From IMG/VR virus record IMGVR_UViG_3300034158_000023, positions 124,001 through 188,000 of that record: a stretch of DNA of 64,000 bases; one strand, 5' to 3'. Both the position numbers and the translations under genes were made by a program. Below the pieces are notes generated by a model. The model was not told the DNA's origin. It was given only the letters and a program-made list of their open reading frames with translations, and made no database searches. Of the stretch, positions 23,369 through 32,217 are shown in pieces (position 1 is the stretch's first letter; each line of letters opens with the position of its first letter).

Positions 23369-23809
23369 TTATAAACAAATGTGTATTTTATTTTTAATGG
23401 ACTCTAGGTATTTATAGAGTAGTGGTTTTACTTCAGTTGGGTAATCTAAACCACCGTTACCACAACCTAAAGGAGGGATAGCTATATCGCAGTCTCCTAA
23501 CTTATCAAGATTGTCAACTAACTTAGTACAGATAGTTTCAACCCATTCTAACTTAGAACCATTAGACCAATGGTCTTTTGTTGCAACCAATAAAATAAGC
23601 TCCTTAGAGGTAATGTAATAAGGTAGTATACTTCCAGGTTTCATTATACCTAGGCGACACTTCTCTTTATAGTTGCGTAAGATACTTGGGTATCTTTTTT
23701 TCGCTTCTAATGCTATCCCTTTACCCATGACGCCTACACAGTTAACTGTTACCAGTTTAATAGGCGCTGGATGTTCGAATATATTACTTACCCCTTCGGA
23801 AACTATCAT
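23369..23809 (-). CDS. Macrodomain ADP-ribosylhydrolase, DarG-like
   Basis: VNCVGVMGKGIAL, ATKDHW (DarG PTKxHW with catalytic Lys) and IAIPPLGCGNGGLD. Confidence 0.88.
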   Translation of the reverse strand: MIVSEGVSNIFEHPAPIKLVTVNCVGVMGKGIALEAKKRYPSILRNYKEKCRLGIMKPGSILPYYITSKELILLVATKDHWSNGSKLEWVETICTKLVDNLDKLGDCDIAIPPLGCGNGGLDYPTEVKPLLYKYLESIKNKIHICL

Positions 23810-24135
23810 CGGTTAAGTTCCTTCTCCAAATCATTCAATGCAGAATTTGGATTTGGTTTAGTTAAATCAATGGCGCACAATCGCAGCATTTCATCTGCTG
23901 AGGCTCTACTTTGCTTTAAGAACGTAGGGAAATCTACACCGAATGCATCTTTCACTTTTAGATTCTTAAATCTAAGCATATACTGAAACTCTAAGGAGTC
24001 AGACATTACGTCTTCCTTAGGATGGAAACCAACCCTACTTAAAGGATCGACTCGTTCAGCTAAGTCATGGTCGCATATGCCGTAGAGTTTATCATAGGTT
24101 TCATTTATGATAACTCTACTAGCTAAAGCTGACAC
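23806..24135 (-). CDS. Conserved ORF, probably the -1 frameshift extension of the upstream 526-aa gene (chaperone gpT-like)
   Basis: The only start is a GTG without SD. The frame stays open upstream past the T7 run at 24261-24267. C-terminal KDAFGVDFPTFLKQSR resembles the helical tails of tail-chaperone extensions. Confidence 0.55.
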   Translation of the reverse strand: MSALASRVIINETYDKLYGICDHDLAERVDPLSRVGFHPKEDVMSDSLEFQYMLRFKNLKVKDAFGVDFPTFLKQSRASADEMLRLCAIDLTKPNPNSALNDLEKELNR

Positions 24136-24210
24136 TGGAACTTTAATGGCAGCGAATAATGTCTTCGCTACCTGACCCTCAGCAACATGACGTCCAAACT
24201 GTTGACTTCG

Positions 24211-24267
24211 TACCGTATCTGCTACGGTAGTTTGGTCAGCAGATAAGACTGCTGCATTAGAAAAAAA
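24211..24267 (-). promoter_or_regulatory. Candidate programmed -1 frameshift signal
   Basis: Slippery U UUU UUU in correct phase, 6-nt spacer, CAGCAG-UCUUAU-CUGCUG hairpin, then UACCGUA-GCAGA-UACGGUA hairpin. Confidence 0.6.
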
Positions 24268-25802
24268 GTGCTGACTCCATCGATAGGATGAACTACACGA
24301 GTTTCTCCATTCTCTGTTACTAACCAGTCATGGCAGTTAGGGCATTCGTAGTTAGGGATACCCACAAACGAAACTAAAGACTCGTTCATGAATTTCTCAA
24401 TGCCTTCTACGATAGCATTAACGAAGTCATCGTTTTCTGACCAGATACCTAACTGCTCTTCGATTGCTTCATCGTCAGATACCTCTAACAGATGATCACC
24501 TACGGTCATTTCAATACGATCAATCCAGTGACCATAGTTACGCAGGATAGTAGCAATACGCATGTCTGTATAGTGCTTAATGCGCTCTGCTTCAGACAAC
24601 ACTGTACCAAACGCCGTTTCTGTACGATGTTCTAACTCAGTCGCCCATCGCGCACCAGAATGGATGTGCTTAGCCACACTAGGTACACTAAAGAACACTT
24701 TAACCGTATCAGTCAAAACGATATGGTTGTTAGCGTAGTAGAACTCATCTTGATACGATTTAAGATCAGCATCACTAACCTTACCTGGTCTAGTAATGAT
24801 CTTAAGTTGGTTAGAGTTCAACATGTTGTGATCTACAACAACCATCTTAGCTACCAGCACTTGACGTCTTGCCACGTGTGTACATTTGTTAGGATCACTA
24901 GTACAAGGTTGTGCAAATGGGAAACCTGCACTGTGGATACAGTGAGCCATATACGCAGCAAGGATTTGCATGTCTGGTAAACGAACTGCTTCCAAGAACT
25001 TCTCGTAGTCGTTACCTGATTCAATACCTACTGAAACACAGTGATCGTAAATGAAACGAATCAAGTTACGGTTAATGGCAAAAGAGTCATTAGAGAAAAT
25101 AGCACCGCGTGTGTTGCGCCCTAACAAGTTACGATCAGATGCAATCAAACGATCCAACTCTACCTGTTCAGATAGCGGAGGCGTACGCAGCGTTACAGAG
25201 AAACCAGAACCCCACAGAGGGAACGAGTTAGCTCCGCCCATGCTAGTCATAGCACTCATTTGCAGAACAGCTTCACGACCTTTTAAAGTACCACTACCGC
25301 TAGGAGCACCAGGCACTAGTTTACGTGGTCCAAAGATAGTACCAGCATAACCAACAGAGTTAACCCAATTAGCTGTAGGTCTAAATGCCGCAGCGTTTAA
25401 ACCATCACTAACAACGTTAGAATAGCTAGCAGCGTTAGATAAATGACGTGACCACTCGGTAGTCTCAGCAGTGGCGTCTAATTTATCCCAATCTGTAGAG
25501 ATATGCTCTAGGACGTTTAATGAGGTACCTAGAATACTTACTGGTGGTACGTCTTCATATGAGTCAAACGTTTTACCATTAGCATCTGTACGAGCAACAA
25601 TAAAGTTAGCAGCAACCGCTACTTTTGCACCAGGAGGTTGAGTAGGCACATATGGAGCTTTAGGAGCGATCTCTTCTTTAGGTGCTTCAGGTTCCTCAGG
25701 GATAACAACAGCTGTCTCCTCTTCAGTAACTGGCACACTAACAACTTCTTGTTCATCTACTGGGATACCAGTAGTTCCAGTGGTAGTTGGATTATTTTCC
25801 AT
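24222..25802 (-). CDS. Conserved morphogenesis protein, possible tail/baseplate-hub assembly chaperone (T4 gp26/gp51- or gpG-like)
   Basis: 526 aa with an acidic Pro-rich N-terminus. Cys pairs CTSDPNKC and CPNC, as in hub-assembly chaperones. Confidence 0.5.
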   Translation of the reverse strand: MENNPTTTGTTGIPVDEQEVVSVPVTEEETAVVIPEEPEAPKEEIAPKAPYVPTQPPGAKVAVAANFIVARTDANGKTFDSYEDVPPVSILGTSLNVLEHISTDWDKLDATAETTEWSRHLSNAASYSNVVSDGLNAAAFRPTANWVNSVGYAGTIFGPRKLVPGAPSGSGTLKGREAVLQMSAMTSMGGANSFPLWGSGFSVTLRTPPLSEQVELDRLIASDRNLLGRNTRGAIFSNDSFAINRNLIRFIYDHCVSVGIESGNDYEKFLEAVRLPDMQILAAYMAHCIHSAGFPFAQPCTSDPNKCTHVARRQVLVAKMVVVDHNMLNSNQLKIITRPGKVSDADLKSYQDEFYYANNHIVLTDTVKVFFSVPSVAKHIHSGARWATELEHRTETAFGTVLSEAERIKHYTDMRIATILRNYGHWIDRIEMTVGDHLLEVSDDEAIEEQLGIWSENDDFVNAIVEGIEKFMNESLVSFVGIPNYECPNCHDWLVTENGETRVVHPIDGVSTFFLMQQSYLLTKLP

Positions 25803-26274
25803 CTTCTTTAACCTCTAACGCCATAGCGTAATCAGTGATTTGCGCTGCTAATGGTAATGCAGTGTTTTGATAATTCTCGATCCAGCTCACATACTGCTGG
25901 GATAGTTCTAAGCAGTTGAGTTGATATGTCTCTGCTGAGTTAGTTTTTTCTATCTCAGGAAGAGCTAAGTGGATCTTTGCTAGTTCAGCTGAAGCAACTT
26001 TAACTACTTGGGCATACTGAGGTGCCAGCTTTAACACTTCAGGGATAGCTGCCATCCCAGGCACAGTAATGATAGGGGCTATCTCTCTGGCTGATACCAA
26101 TAATTGTTCAGCAGTGGAAGCAAATACTTTTAACTCGCGTTTAGCGCGCTTAGTAGTTTTATTGTGTACGAAGTTAGAGCCACTTACTTTAATGGCATCT
26201 CGTAACGCAACAGCAGCGTTTTTATTTTGTTTGTTCATTTTTCCAGATTCCCGTAAATTGGCAATTGTATACAT
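25792..26274 (-). CDS. Conserved hypothetical helical protein (true start may be ATG at 26238)
   Basis: 160-aa ORF overlapping the next gene's start in operon fashion. Confidence 0.55.
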   Translation of the reverse strand: MYTIANLRESGKMNKQNKNAAVALRDAIKVSGSNFVHNKTTKRAKRELKVFASTAEQLLVSAREIAPIITVPGMAAIPEVLKLAPQYAQVVKVASAELAKIHLALPEIEKTNSAETYQLNCLELSQQYVSWIENYQNTALPLAAQITDYAMALEVKEDGK

Positions 26275-32177: not shown

Positions 32178-32217
32178 GGCATAAAGGGAGAGTGTAAGCT
32201 CTCCCTTATTTTTTTTT
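32178..32217. terminator. Bidirectional terminator
   Basis: AAGGGAGAG-TGTAAG-CTCTCCCTT plus T-tract on +. TTTATGCC follows on -. Confidence 0.8.

Follow-up and report, generated by a model that had tools for sequence, protein, structure and literature searches.

Several phages and at least one bacterial gene make two forms of a protein through a -1 shift near the end of a reading frame. In lambda, the tail assembly chaperone gene pair gpG/gpGT consists of two overlapping frames, and a -1 slip on G GGA AAG, a few codons before the stop of the first frame (about 140 aa), yields in a fixed ratio a short and a long product that share their N-terminal part; no strong stimulatory structure is required, the products are apparently not in the virion, and the gene lies between a tail tube gene and a tape-measure gene. 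This arrangement is reported to be conserved among long-tailed phages even where the sequences have diverged beyond recognition (Xu, Hendrix and Duda 2004). The myovirus P2 makes its tail chaperone pair gpE/gpE+E' by a -1 slip on a T-run, T TTT TTG, and in E. coli dnaX a -1 slip on a homopolymeric heptamer, aided by an upstream SD and a downstream hairpin, gives tau and a truncated gamma in a set ratio. In Thermus dnaX, by contrast, it is RNA polymerase that slips. T4 has baseplate hub assembly proteins of 208-249 aa (gp26, gp26' and gp51; phrog_150), whose forms arise by internal initiation (26') and by gene duplication (26 and 51), and not by frameshifting.

A sequence-only reading of 64,000 nucleotides of IMG/VR virus record IMGVR_UViG_3300034158_000023 (positions 124,001 to 188,000; hereafter the window) proposed that a programmed -1 ribosomal frameshift followed by two hairpins produces a lambda gpG/gpGT-like pair for tail or hub assembly in a jumbo phage, of a kind that its author did not know from phiKZ-like phages. 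We evaluated this proposal by comparative sequence analysis and structure prediction. The observation itself proved correct in every sequence detail, whereas the interpretation was only partly supported, as described below.

Sequence of the putative recoding site

The features of the locus, all on the minus strand, are as follows.

25792-26274 (-): upstream gene in the position of phiKZ gp78, overlapping the start of gene A by 11 nt
24222-25802 (-): gene A (zero frame), 526 aa, homolog of phiKZ gp77, PhiPA3 gp074 and 201phi2-1 gp136; the short product
24261-24267 (-): slippery heptamer U UUU UUU in X XXY YYZ phase, on the conserved Phe513-Phe514
24222-24261 (-): dual-coding overlap, the last 12 codons plus stop of A in frame 0 and the first 13 codons of B in frame -1
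24237-24254 (-): hairpin 1, 6 bp with a 6-nt loop, 6 nt after the heptamer
24211-24229 (-): hairpin 2, 7 bp, spanning the stop codon of A
23806-24261 (-): B reading frame (-1 relative to A), 151 codons plus the TGA stop (23808-23806), inferred to be translated only as the C-terminal extension of A-B
24135-24137 (-): GTG, the only canonical start in the B frame, rejected as the real start
23369-23809 (-): macro-domain gene, whose ATG overlaps the B stop (ATGA), so that it is in the same operon

Gene A ends in ...HPIDGVSTFFLMQQSYLLTKLP*, and its codons ACT TTT TTT CTA place the heptamer in phase 12 sense codons before the TAG. A 6-nt spacer separates the heptamer from hairpin 1 (CAGCAG/CUGCUG), which is followed by hairpin 2 (UACCGUA/UACGGUA). 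The -1 frame is open from 24327 to the TGA, and its first ATG, GTG or TTG is the GTG at 24135, 42 codons into B and without an SD. The slipped product would comprise 514 + 151 = 665 aa, with the junction ...VSTFF-SNAAVLSADQTTVADTVR. A T7 run alone is not surprising in this DNA, as the window contains 17 matches against 22 +/- 6 expected; its significance comes from conservation.

Gene A matched phrog_4585 (E 6.8e-79), and tblastn found hits in 186 jumbo-phage records; four Cys residues (C300, C307, C487 and C490) are invariant. Pfam gave no family for A or B, and PHROGs gave only unannotated families. IMG/VR scans with A of the window, of LucasX and of pEa_SNUABM_54, and with an alignment of A, returned only the window's own contig or nothing, while a word-indexed protein search found only 4 relatives of A, even with a 30-sequence profile, and 7 of B. 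The macro-domain gene (Pfam Macro, E 1.5e-6; phrog_335) follows B also in Goslar and in the related loci L005, L006, L031, L034, L036, L037 and L039, and the upstream gene has a conserved position in the annotated relatives.

Conservation of the site and of the B frame

The sequence-only reading had named a conserved T-run and -1 overlap in orthologs as a test of the proposal, and we examined 36 related loci from at least 19 lineages below 35% aa identity, which included phiKZ, PhiPA3, 201phi2-1, Goslar, RAY, SPN3US-like, Vibrio, Ralstonia, Burkholderia, Xanthomonas and Bacillus phages as well as metagenomic contigs. In 36 of 36 loci B is in the -1 frame of A, and that frame is open across a T5-T8 run at the homologous Phe-Phe. 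A perfect in-phase U UUU UUN was present in 28 of 36 loci, and every locus kept at least an in-phase U UUY; the remaining eight loci have only T5-T6 without a perfect heptamer (N UUU UUY or U UUU NNN), which would be weak sites. The position is pinned to the run: in the locus L038 a -1-frame TAA sits immediately before TTT TTT, and in L036 the zero-frame stop is 4 codons after it.

Selection was also evident at the nucleotide level. The first Phe codon is TTT in 30 of 30 loci, where the mean expectation is 0.34, even in phages in which TTC dominates gene A (2 TTT vs 17 TTC in FLC8, 2/17 in DT01 and 5/19 in FLC1-1B), and the product of the expectations is 1.4e-16. The preceding wobble base is T in 26 of 30, where the T3 frequency is 0.30.

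An alignment of 30 B-frame translations showed conserved motifs (FG; E-AYD..yGI.DH) upstream of the first canonical start, which lies at residue 86 in phiKZ, 88 in AgentSmith, 78 in Ea277G and 43 in the window. The 151-aa stretch of the window hit phrog_12109 over profile positions 6-141 of 147, starting at residue 11 and thus upstream of the GTG. Between the stop of A and the GTG, the window and L005, one of its two nearest relatives, differ at B-frame codon positions [2,1,13], with 12 synonymous and 1 non-synonymous codon changes. Initiation at the GTG would therefore remove 42 residues that are conserved and under purifying selection, including the FG motif. The dual-coding overlap is nearly invariant in the relatives at 84% and 76% aa identity. 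A conserved RBS and start of B, which would have spoken against the proposal, was found nowhere as a conserved feature, although a few lineages have a start early in B (L031 ATG at residue 21, 201phi2-1 TTG at 9, Eowyn TTG at 15, and RAY an ATG upstream of the run), so that free B may also be made there.

We also looked for natural in-frame fusions. The 150 best of 1515 family representatives are 453-645 aa long, in nearly all of them the match to A runs to within about 15 residues of the C-terminus, and in none is there room for a roughly 150-aa B domain, indicating that the two-frame layout is maintained. One candidate (P0010/L032, a Logan contig with T5 where its relative Ea277G has T7) looked like a fusion, but it has a second indel further on and was treated as an error-prone assembly, not as evidence.

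The hairpins are not a conserved stimulator

RNAfold of the 60 nt after the heptamer gave -17.7 kcal/mol in the window (z = -3.7 against shuffles), and the window and its two nearest relatives, L005 and L006, have hairpins at 6 and 31 nt (z -2.9 to -4.0). Hairpin 1 retains 6/6 pairs in these three, but only 3/6, 1/6 and 3/6 in L031, L034 and L036; hairpin 2 shows one compensatory C-G to U-A change in L005, 5/7 pairs in L006 and L031, and 4/7 in L034. The hairpins are absent at 59% B identity and beyond, and the family-wide median z of the downstream fold is about 0. A role for them as a general stimulator was thus not supported, and they remain a possible lineage-specific one. An SD-like motif lies upstream in 9 of 36 loci against a 16% background and is not enriched, and a search of Rfam gave no significant match (best E 0.28, 23 bits against a gathering score of 60).

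Predicted structure of A and genomic context

A and B were handled separately. The AlphaFold model of A, made with an alignment of hits from the family-representative search, was confident (pLDDT 88.9, pTM 0.85). In a Foldseek search of BFVD it matched proteins of T4-like phages named baseplate hub assembly chaperone, assembly protein or hub subunit at E 4.8e-6 to 3.6e-3 with target TM 0.48-0.58 (the hits named baseplate hub assembly chaperone/protein include E 4.8e-6, 6.3e-6 and 3.5e-4, target TM 0.49-0.58). These targets are themselves predicted structures, and neither a fold search nor a sequence search of the PDB gave a match. Proteins named tail assembly or tape-measure chaperone matched only at E 0.55-3.1 and probability 0.09-0.57. 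At the sequence level, hhalign aligned only the last 40 residues of A with the C-terminus of T4 gp26 (CPxC...FFxL; probability 32-38%) and found no relation between A and gp51. A and all 30 orthologs hit only phrog_4585 and phrog_8054, whereas T4 gp26 and gp51 hit phrog_150. B showed no detectable relation to T4 gp25, gp26 or gp51.

The locus is not in a tail module, as its neighbours are the gp78-position gene, the macro-domain gene, RNA polymerase beta-type subunits and a helicase, and the synteny is the same in phiKZ, 201phi2-1, Goslar and SPFM17. Indirect indications of a non-virion protein are that the Churi ortholog is listed as a non-structural protein found 15 min after infection (PMC11849849), and that 201phi2-1 gp136 carries no mass-spectrometry note whereas its neighbour gp138 does.

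None of the 25 annotated GenBank records inspected joins the two CDS, and full-text literature searches found no description of the arrangement; a 2026 jumbo-phage review contains no mention of frameshift, recoding or slippage, and "gp77" in the Goslar, PCH45 and PhiPA3 papers refers to other proteins. The statement that such a pair is not described for phiKZ-like phages was to this extent supported.

Interpretation

Of the original proposal, a programmed -1 shift at the T-run producing a short/long pair and a role in tail or hub assembly were supported. We consider a conserved programmed -1 recoding site, with ribosomal slippage, to be the best explanation, and hold it with moderate confidence. 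In this model, most ribosomes translating gene A would read through ACU UUU UUU CUA and stop 12 codons later, giving the 526-aa protein, while a fraction would slip back one base on U UUU UUU, where the Phe-tRNAs re-pair with UUU in the -1 frame, and continue through UCU AAU GCA for 151 more codons. In the resulting 665-aa A-B protein the last 12 residues of the C-terminal helix of A would be replaced by a flexible linker and a helical B domain, B having no usable start of its own in this phage. As A appears from its predicted fold to be a large relative of the T4 gp26/gp51 baseplate-hub assembly factors, the pair would most likely act as a fixed-ratio short/long non-virion assembly factor for the tail hub, in the way lambda gpG/gpGT and P2 gpE/E+E' work. 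Our analysis establishes the site, its phase, its conservation and the coding constraint on the B frame, whereas the ribosomal nature of the shift, its efficiency, the production of the trans-frame protein and the role in assembly are inferences from these data. We regard recoding of some kind as very likely, a ribosomal rather than a transcriptional mechanism as more likely than not, and a hub or tail assembly role, which rests on similarity between predicted structures and on a weak hhalign hit, as about as likely as not.

The alternative that survives best, although we think it unlikely, is that the products are the same but the phage (or host) RNA polymerase stutters on the T-run and adds one U to a fraction of transcripts, which would then encode A-B in a single frame. 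The element is a pure homopolymer (T7-T8 in 26 of 36 loci), no conserved ribosomal stimulator was found, and selection for T at the preceding wobble base lengthens the run as much as it completes a heptamer. Because the phase of the run is fixed by the conserved Phe-Phe, its phase does not separate the two mechanisms. Furthermore, these phages transcribe with their own unusual multisubunit RNA polymerases, encoded next to this locus, whose slippage behaviour has not, to our knowledge, been described. However, ten of 36 loci have only T5-T6, which is short for efficient polymerase slippage, whereas the in-phase U UUY kept at every locus is enough for single-tRNA ribosomal slippage, and the second codon is TTC in 9 loci, which ends the run instead of extending it.

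It is very unlikely that there is no recoding and that B is an ordinary gene, started at a non-canonical or weak start or by termination-reinitiation after A, with the T-run merely encoding Phe-Phe. All 25 GenBank records inspected do annotate B as a separate CDS, a few lineages have the early starts noted above, and Phe-Phe is a protein-level motif that T4 gp26 also has. Nevertheless, the annotated starts are not conserved and cut off conserved B motifs, with up to 88 conserved-frame codons preceding the first canonical start; the 36 of 36 -1 phase and a frame always open back to the T-run are not expected for an independent gene; and the TTT and wobble-T preferences go against the local codon usage, whereas T4 encodes the same Phe-Phe as TTC TTT. 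An assembly error or a recently broken single gene can be all but dismissed, since, although the window matches a metagenomic contig and homopolymers are error-prone (as the T5 of L032 illustrates), the same two-frame layout appears in 36 independently sequenced genomes, including isolate phages sequenced by different groups, in no case as a single ORF, and with the B frame under purifying selection.

If this interpretation is true, every phiKZ-like phage, including the laboratory models phiKZ, PhiPA3, 201phi2-1, Goslar, RAY and the SPN3US group, would make a roughly 650-700-aa protein that appears in no annotation we inspected, and the ORFs now listed downstream of gp77 homologs (for example PHIKZ076.4, 80 aa) would be truncated fragments of its C-terminal domain. 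This would correct the gene catalogue of a much-studied phage family and add a recoding event in a gene family and genome position outside the classic tail-chaperone case. It would also give a concrete handle, a single synonymous change, for asking what the gp26/gp51-type hub assembly factors do, and a natural test of whether the unusual phage RNA polymerases or the ribosome perform the slip. A further reading, which we consider doubtful although it is not excluded, is that the A/A-B pair is the missing counterpart, in phiKZ-like and T4-type myoviruses, of the frameshifted gpG/gpGT chaperone. On this reading a gp26/gp51-type hub assembly factor would be made in two forms by an ancient -1 frameshift kept across the whole nucleus-forming jumbo-phage family and its relatives, while T4 would reach the same end by gene duplication and internal initiation. 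This would tie the T4 hub "catalysts", unexplained since the 1970s, to the general short/long chaperone logic of tail length and hub assembly.

Comparison with described systems

With lambda gpG/gpGT the locus shares two overlapping frames, a predicted -1 slip a few codons before the stop of the first frame, a predicted short/long pair (526 and 665 aa) with a common N-terminal part, an apparent lack of need for a strong stimulatory structure, products apparently not in the virion, and an arrangement kept although the sequences diverge beyond recognition. It differs in the size of A, in a predicted fold that matches chaperone folds only weakly, in its position away from any tube and tape-measure genes, and in having a U-run as the slippery sequence. 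The pair would therefore work like gpG/gpGT, but membership of that family was not supported. With P2, also a myovirus, it shares a -1 slip on a T-run, predicted in the case of this locus, and the P2 sequence is identical to the heptamer U UUU UUG of Erwinia phage pEa_SNUABM_54, but the protein family, size and genomic position are different.

With T4 gp26, gp26' and gp51, A shares the predicted fold similarity, two Cys pairs and a C-terminal motif (hydrophobic-P-x-x-CPxC...FFxL) found at the very end of T4 gp26; T4 gene 26 also gives two products, and the next T4 gene (25) starts in the -1 frame, overlapping the stop of 26. However, A does not hit phrog_150, is much longer than the T4 proteins, and T4 has no slippery run. 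Finally, as in E. coli dnaX, a -1 slip on a homopolymeric heptamer would yield two forms of one protein in a set ratio, but in dnaX the shift truncates the protein and relies on an upstream SD plus a downstream hairpin, whereas here the shift would extend the protein and no conserved stimulator is seen.

The sequence elements at the end of ORF A

We examined the minus strand of positions 23700-24420 of the window and listed its ORFs, and every sequence statement of the sequence-only reading, which had proposed a -1 frameshift near the end of a 526-aa ORF, was confirmed. The elements, all on the minus strand, were as follows.
25802 to 24222: ORF A, 526 aa, ending ...HPIDGVSTFFLMQQSYLLTKLP before its stop codon.
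24267-24261: U UUU UUU heptamer in X XXY YYZ phase, formed by the two Phe codons and the preceding Thr codon (ACT TTT TTT).
24327 to 23808-23806: open -1 frame, ending at a TGA.
24135: GTG, the first ATG/GTG/TTG of the -1 frame, preceded by AAAGTTCCA and no SD.
24254-24237 and 24229-24211: two hairpins downstream of the heptamer.

A slip on the heptamer would give a product of 514 + 151 = 665 aa. The 60 nt following the heptamer were predicted to fold to -17.7 kcal/mol (z = -3.7). In the +1 frame a TAA follows the T-run directly (TTC TAA, 24260-24258, minus strand), so that a transcript or ribosome shifted the other way would end right after Phe-Phe; this was not conserved in phiKZ. A T7 run by itself was not remarkable in this window (17 matches, against 22 +/- 6 in shuffled sequences), and the case therefore depends entirely on comparative evidence. 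Most other T7-T9 runs in the window (32209-32217; also 4012, 9256, 15159, 22688, 54505, 56066 and 63478) lie between ORFs, at the ends of genes, and may be terminator T-tracts or promoter regions.

Families of A and B

ORF A matched phrog_4585 (E 6.8e-79), a family of unknown function, and no Pfam family. A tblastn search found A in 186 phage records, all jumbo phages, including phiKZ (PHIKZ077), PhiPA3 (074), 201phi2-1 (gp136), Goslar, RAY, SPN3US-like Salmonella phages, and Vibrio, Ralstonia, Burkholderia, Xanthomonas and Bacillus phages, all at under 30% identity. The 151-aa translation of the -1 frame from the slip site (B) matched phrog_12109 over profile positions 6-141 of 147, starting at residue 11, whereas the 109-aa ORF from the GTG covered only positions 42-141. 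The N-terminal third of this family is therefore encoded upstream of the only canonical start.

Conservation of the -1 phase and the T-run

In order to test whether this arrangement is conserved, we compared 36 loci, comprising 25 annotated GenBank loci, the window's own 215-kb IMG/VR contig (IMGVR_UViG_3300034158_000023, to which the window is 100% identical) and 10 metagenomic relatives, which fall into at least 19 groups below 35% aa identity in A. In all 36, the ORF after A is in the -1 frame of A, and that frame is open back across a T-run lying on a conserved Phe-Phe, 4-44 codons before the stop of A. The run is T5 in 3 loci, T6 in 7, T7 in 19 and T8 in 7. Twenty-eight loci have a perfect in-phase U UUU UUN, and the other eight have N UUU UUY or U UUU NNN. 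The possible shift window is pinned to the run, as in one locus (L038) a -1-frame TAA directly precedes TTT TTT, and in another (L036) the zero-frame stop follows 4 codons later.

Codon choice at the site was then compared with that expected in 30 of these loci. The first Phe codon is TTT in 30/30, although TTC is preferred in gene A of many of them (FLC8, 2 TTT vs 17 TTC; DT01, 2/17; FLC1-1B, 5/19), and the product of the expectations is 1.4e-16. The wobble base of the preceding codon is T in 26/30, whatever the amino acid (Thr, Ile, Val, Gly, Leu, Tyr, Ala), against a mean T3 frequency of 0.30. T4 gp26, which has the same C-terminal Phe-Phe, encodes it as TTC TTT and so has no slippery run.

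A shortened run was seen in L032, a contig of an Ea277G-like phage from the Logan assembly of SRR32346285. At L032:1330-1345 the run is T5 instead of T7, which puts A and the N-terminal part of B in one frame (protein P0010, 253 aa), but a second indel further on breaks the frame again. This is probably an error-prone assembly, although it could be run-length polymorphism.

Coding constraint in the B frame upstream of any canonical start

The B-frame translations taken from the slip site aligned across the family with conserved motifs, namely an FG motif at about residues 22-45, then E-AYD..yGI.DH, then HP.ED. These motifs precede the first canonical start in many phages, as this start is at residue 86 in phiKZ, 88 in AgentSmith, 78 in Ea277G and 69 in RAY. 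Between the stop of A and the GTG, the window and its 84%-identical relative L005 differ at B-frame codon positions [2,1,13], which is 12 synonymous and 1 non-synonymous codon change.

The deposited annotations of the ORF after the gp77 homolog are inconsistent across the 25 GenBank loci. B is given starts at non-homologous positions, leaving 'gaps' of up to 218 nt; in phiKZ (L001:3782-4242) PHIKZ076.4 is an 80-aa fragment after such a 218-nt gap, RAY gp266 (L018:2601-3149) is started at an ATG upstream of the T-run, and other records use GTG or TTG. None of the CDS entries is flagged as joined.

An exhaustive HMMER scan found 1515 cluster representatives of A, of which the best 150 are 453-645 aa. 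In nearly all of these 150 the A match runs to within about 15 residues of the C-terminus, and none leaves room for a roughly 150-aa B domain, so that no in-frame A-B fusion was seen. Evolution keeps the two-frame layout, as expected if both forms are needed.

Stimulatory elements and the nature of the probable slip

The hairpins are intact in the window and in L005 (with one compensatory C-G to U-A pair), and largely so in L006, the other of the window's two nearest relatives, but they are lost in the further relatives L031 (59% B identity, T7 kept), L034 and L036. Across 30 loci the median z of the downstream fold was about 0. An SD-like motif 5-20 nt upstream occurred in 9/36 loci, against a 16% background, and an Rfam search returned no significant match (best E 0.28, 23 bits against a gathering score of 60). 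The only conserved element seen is therefore the U-run, as in lambda G/GT and P2 E/E+E', which are not known to need a strong stimulator.

Because the phase of the run is dictated by the Phe-Phe motif, we cannot rule out that slippage is instead by the phage RNA polymerase. We favor the ribosome for two reasons, as every locus keeps at least an in-phase U UUY, and ten loci have only T5-T6, which is short for polymerase stuttering.

Predicted structure and possible function

With a 113-sequence alignment, AlphaFold gave a confident model of A (pLDDT 88.9, pTM 0.85), with a C-terminal helix at residues 509-524 that contains the slip site; the long form would therefore lose the last 12 residues of that helix. 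B was predicted to be helical, with a disordered first 13 residues (pLDDT 70.9). Four Cys residues of A, C487/C490 (CPxC, window 24333-24344, minus strand) and C300/C307 (PC-x6-C-x-H, window 24882-24905, minus strand), are invariant in 113 family members, which suggests a structural zinc site bridging two distant segments. T4 gp26 also has two Cys pairs.

A Foldseek search of the PDB with the A model found nothing. In BFVD, after the jumbo-phage orthologs, A matched proteins named 'baseplate hub assembly chaperone' (Acidovorax phage ACP17, E 4.8e-6, target TM 0.58), 'baseplate hub assembly protein, bacteriophage T4-like' (E 6.3e-6) and 'baseplate hub subunit' (Vibrio phage VH7D, E 3.5e-4), whereas tail-assembly-chaperone folds matched only at E 0.5-3. 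Alignment with hhalign placed the last 40-50 residues of A on the very C-terminus of T4 gp26, although with a probability of only 32-38%, sharing P-x-x-CPxC...FFxL. T4 gp26 ends ...CPECGKTHAHVIRGLKEFFELL before its stop (NC_000866 115802-115869, minus strand; L033:2803-2870 in our T4 locus), which is the same C-terminal motif as in protein A. T4 gene 25 starts in the -1 frame, overlapping the stop of gene 26 (TAATG), and an internal-start product, 26', is also annotated in T4. Both T4 gp26 and gp51 belong to phrog_150. B matched only its own orthologs, and showed no relation to T4 gp25, gp26 or gp51.

The Churi ortholog of phiKZ gp077 is listed as a non-structural protein detected 15 min after infection (PMC11849849). 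The neighboring genes encode RNA polymerase beta-type subunits, a helicase and a macro-domain protein, and not tail proteins. The macro-domain gene (window 23369-23809, minus strand; Pfam Macro, phrog_335 'phosphatase') follows B with an ATGA overlap, and is a conserved neighbor in the window's clade and in Goslar, but not in phiKZ.

Discussion

The observation made in the sequence-only reading was correct, and the frameshift that it proposed is strongly supported. Its interpretation was upheld only in part, as the hairpins that it placed after the heptamer are lineage-specific, and as the likeness that it drew to lambda gpG/gpGT did not extend to membership of that family. The heptamer, its phase, its conservation and the constraint on the B frame are what our comparisons show, whereas the production of a trans-frame protein, a slip by the ribosome rather than by the polymerase, and a part in assembly, including absence from the finished virion, are inferred. 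We found no description of this site in the full-text literature that could be searched, which did not cover most subscription journals, nor in the papers that were read, among them a 2026 review of jumbo phages. A conserved -1 frameshift in a phage tail-assembly gene is in itself already known; what would be new is its presence, unannotated, in several model phages, in a gene whose assembly-factor role is plausible but inferred. In this view the A/A-B pair would work like gpG/GT, but it differs from that family in position, size and predicted fold. Although A was not found to belong to phrog_150 by sequence profile, its nearest relatives by predicted fold are the T4 gp26/gp51 hub assembly factors.
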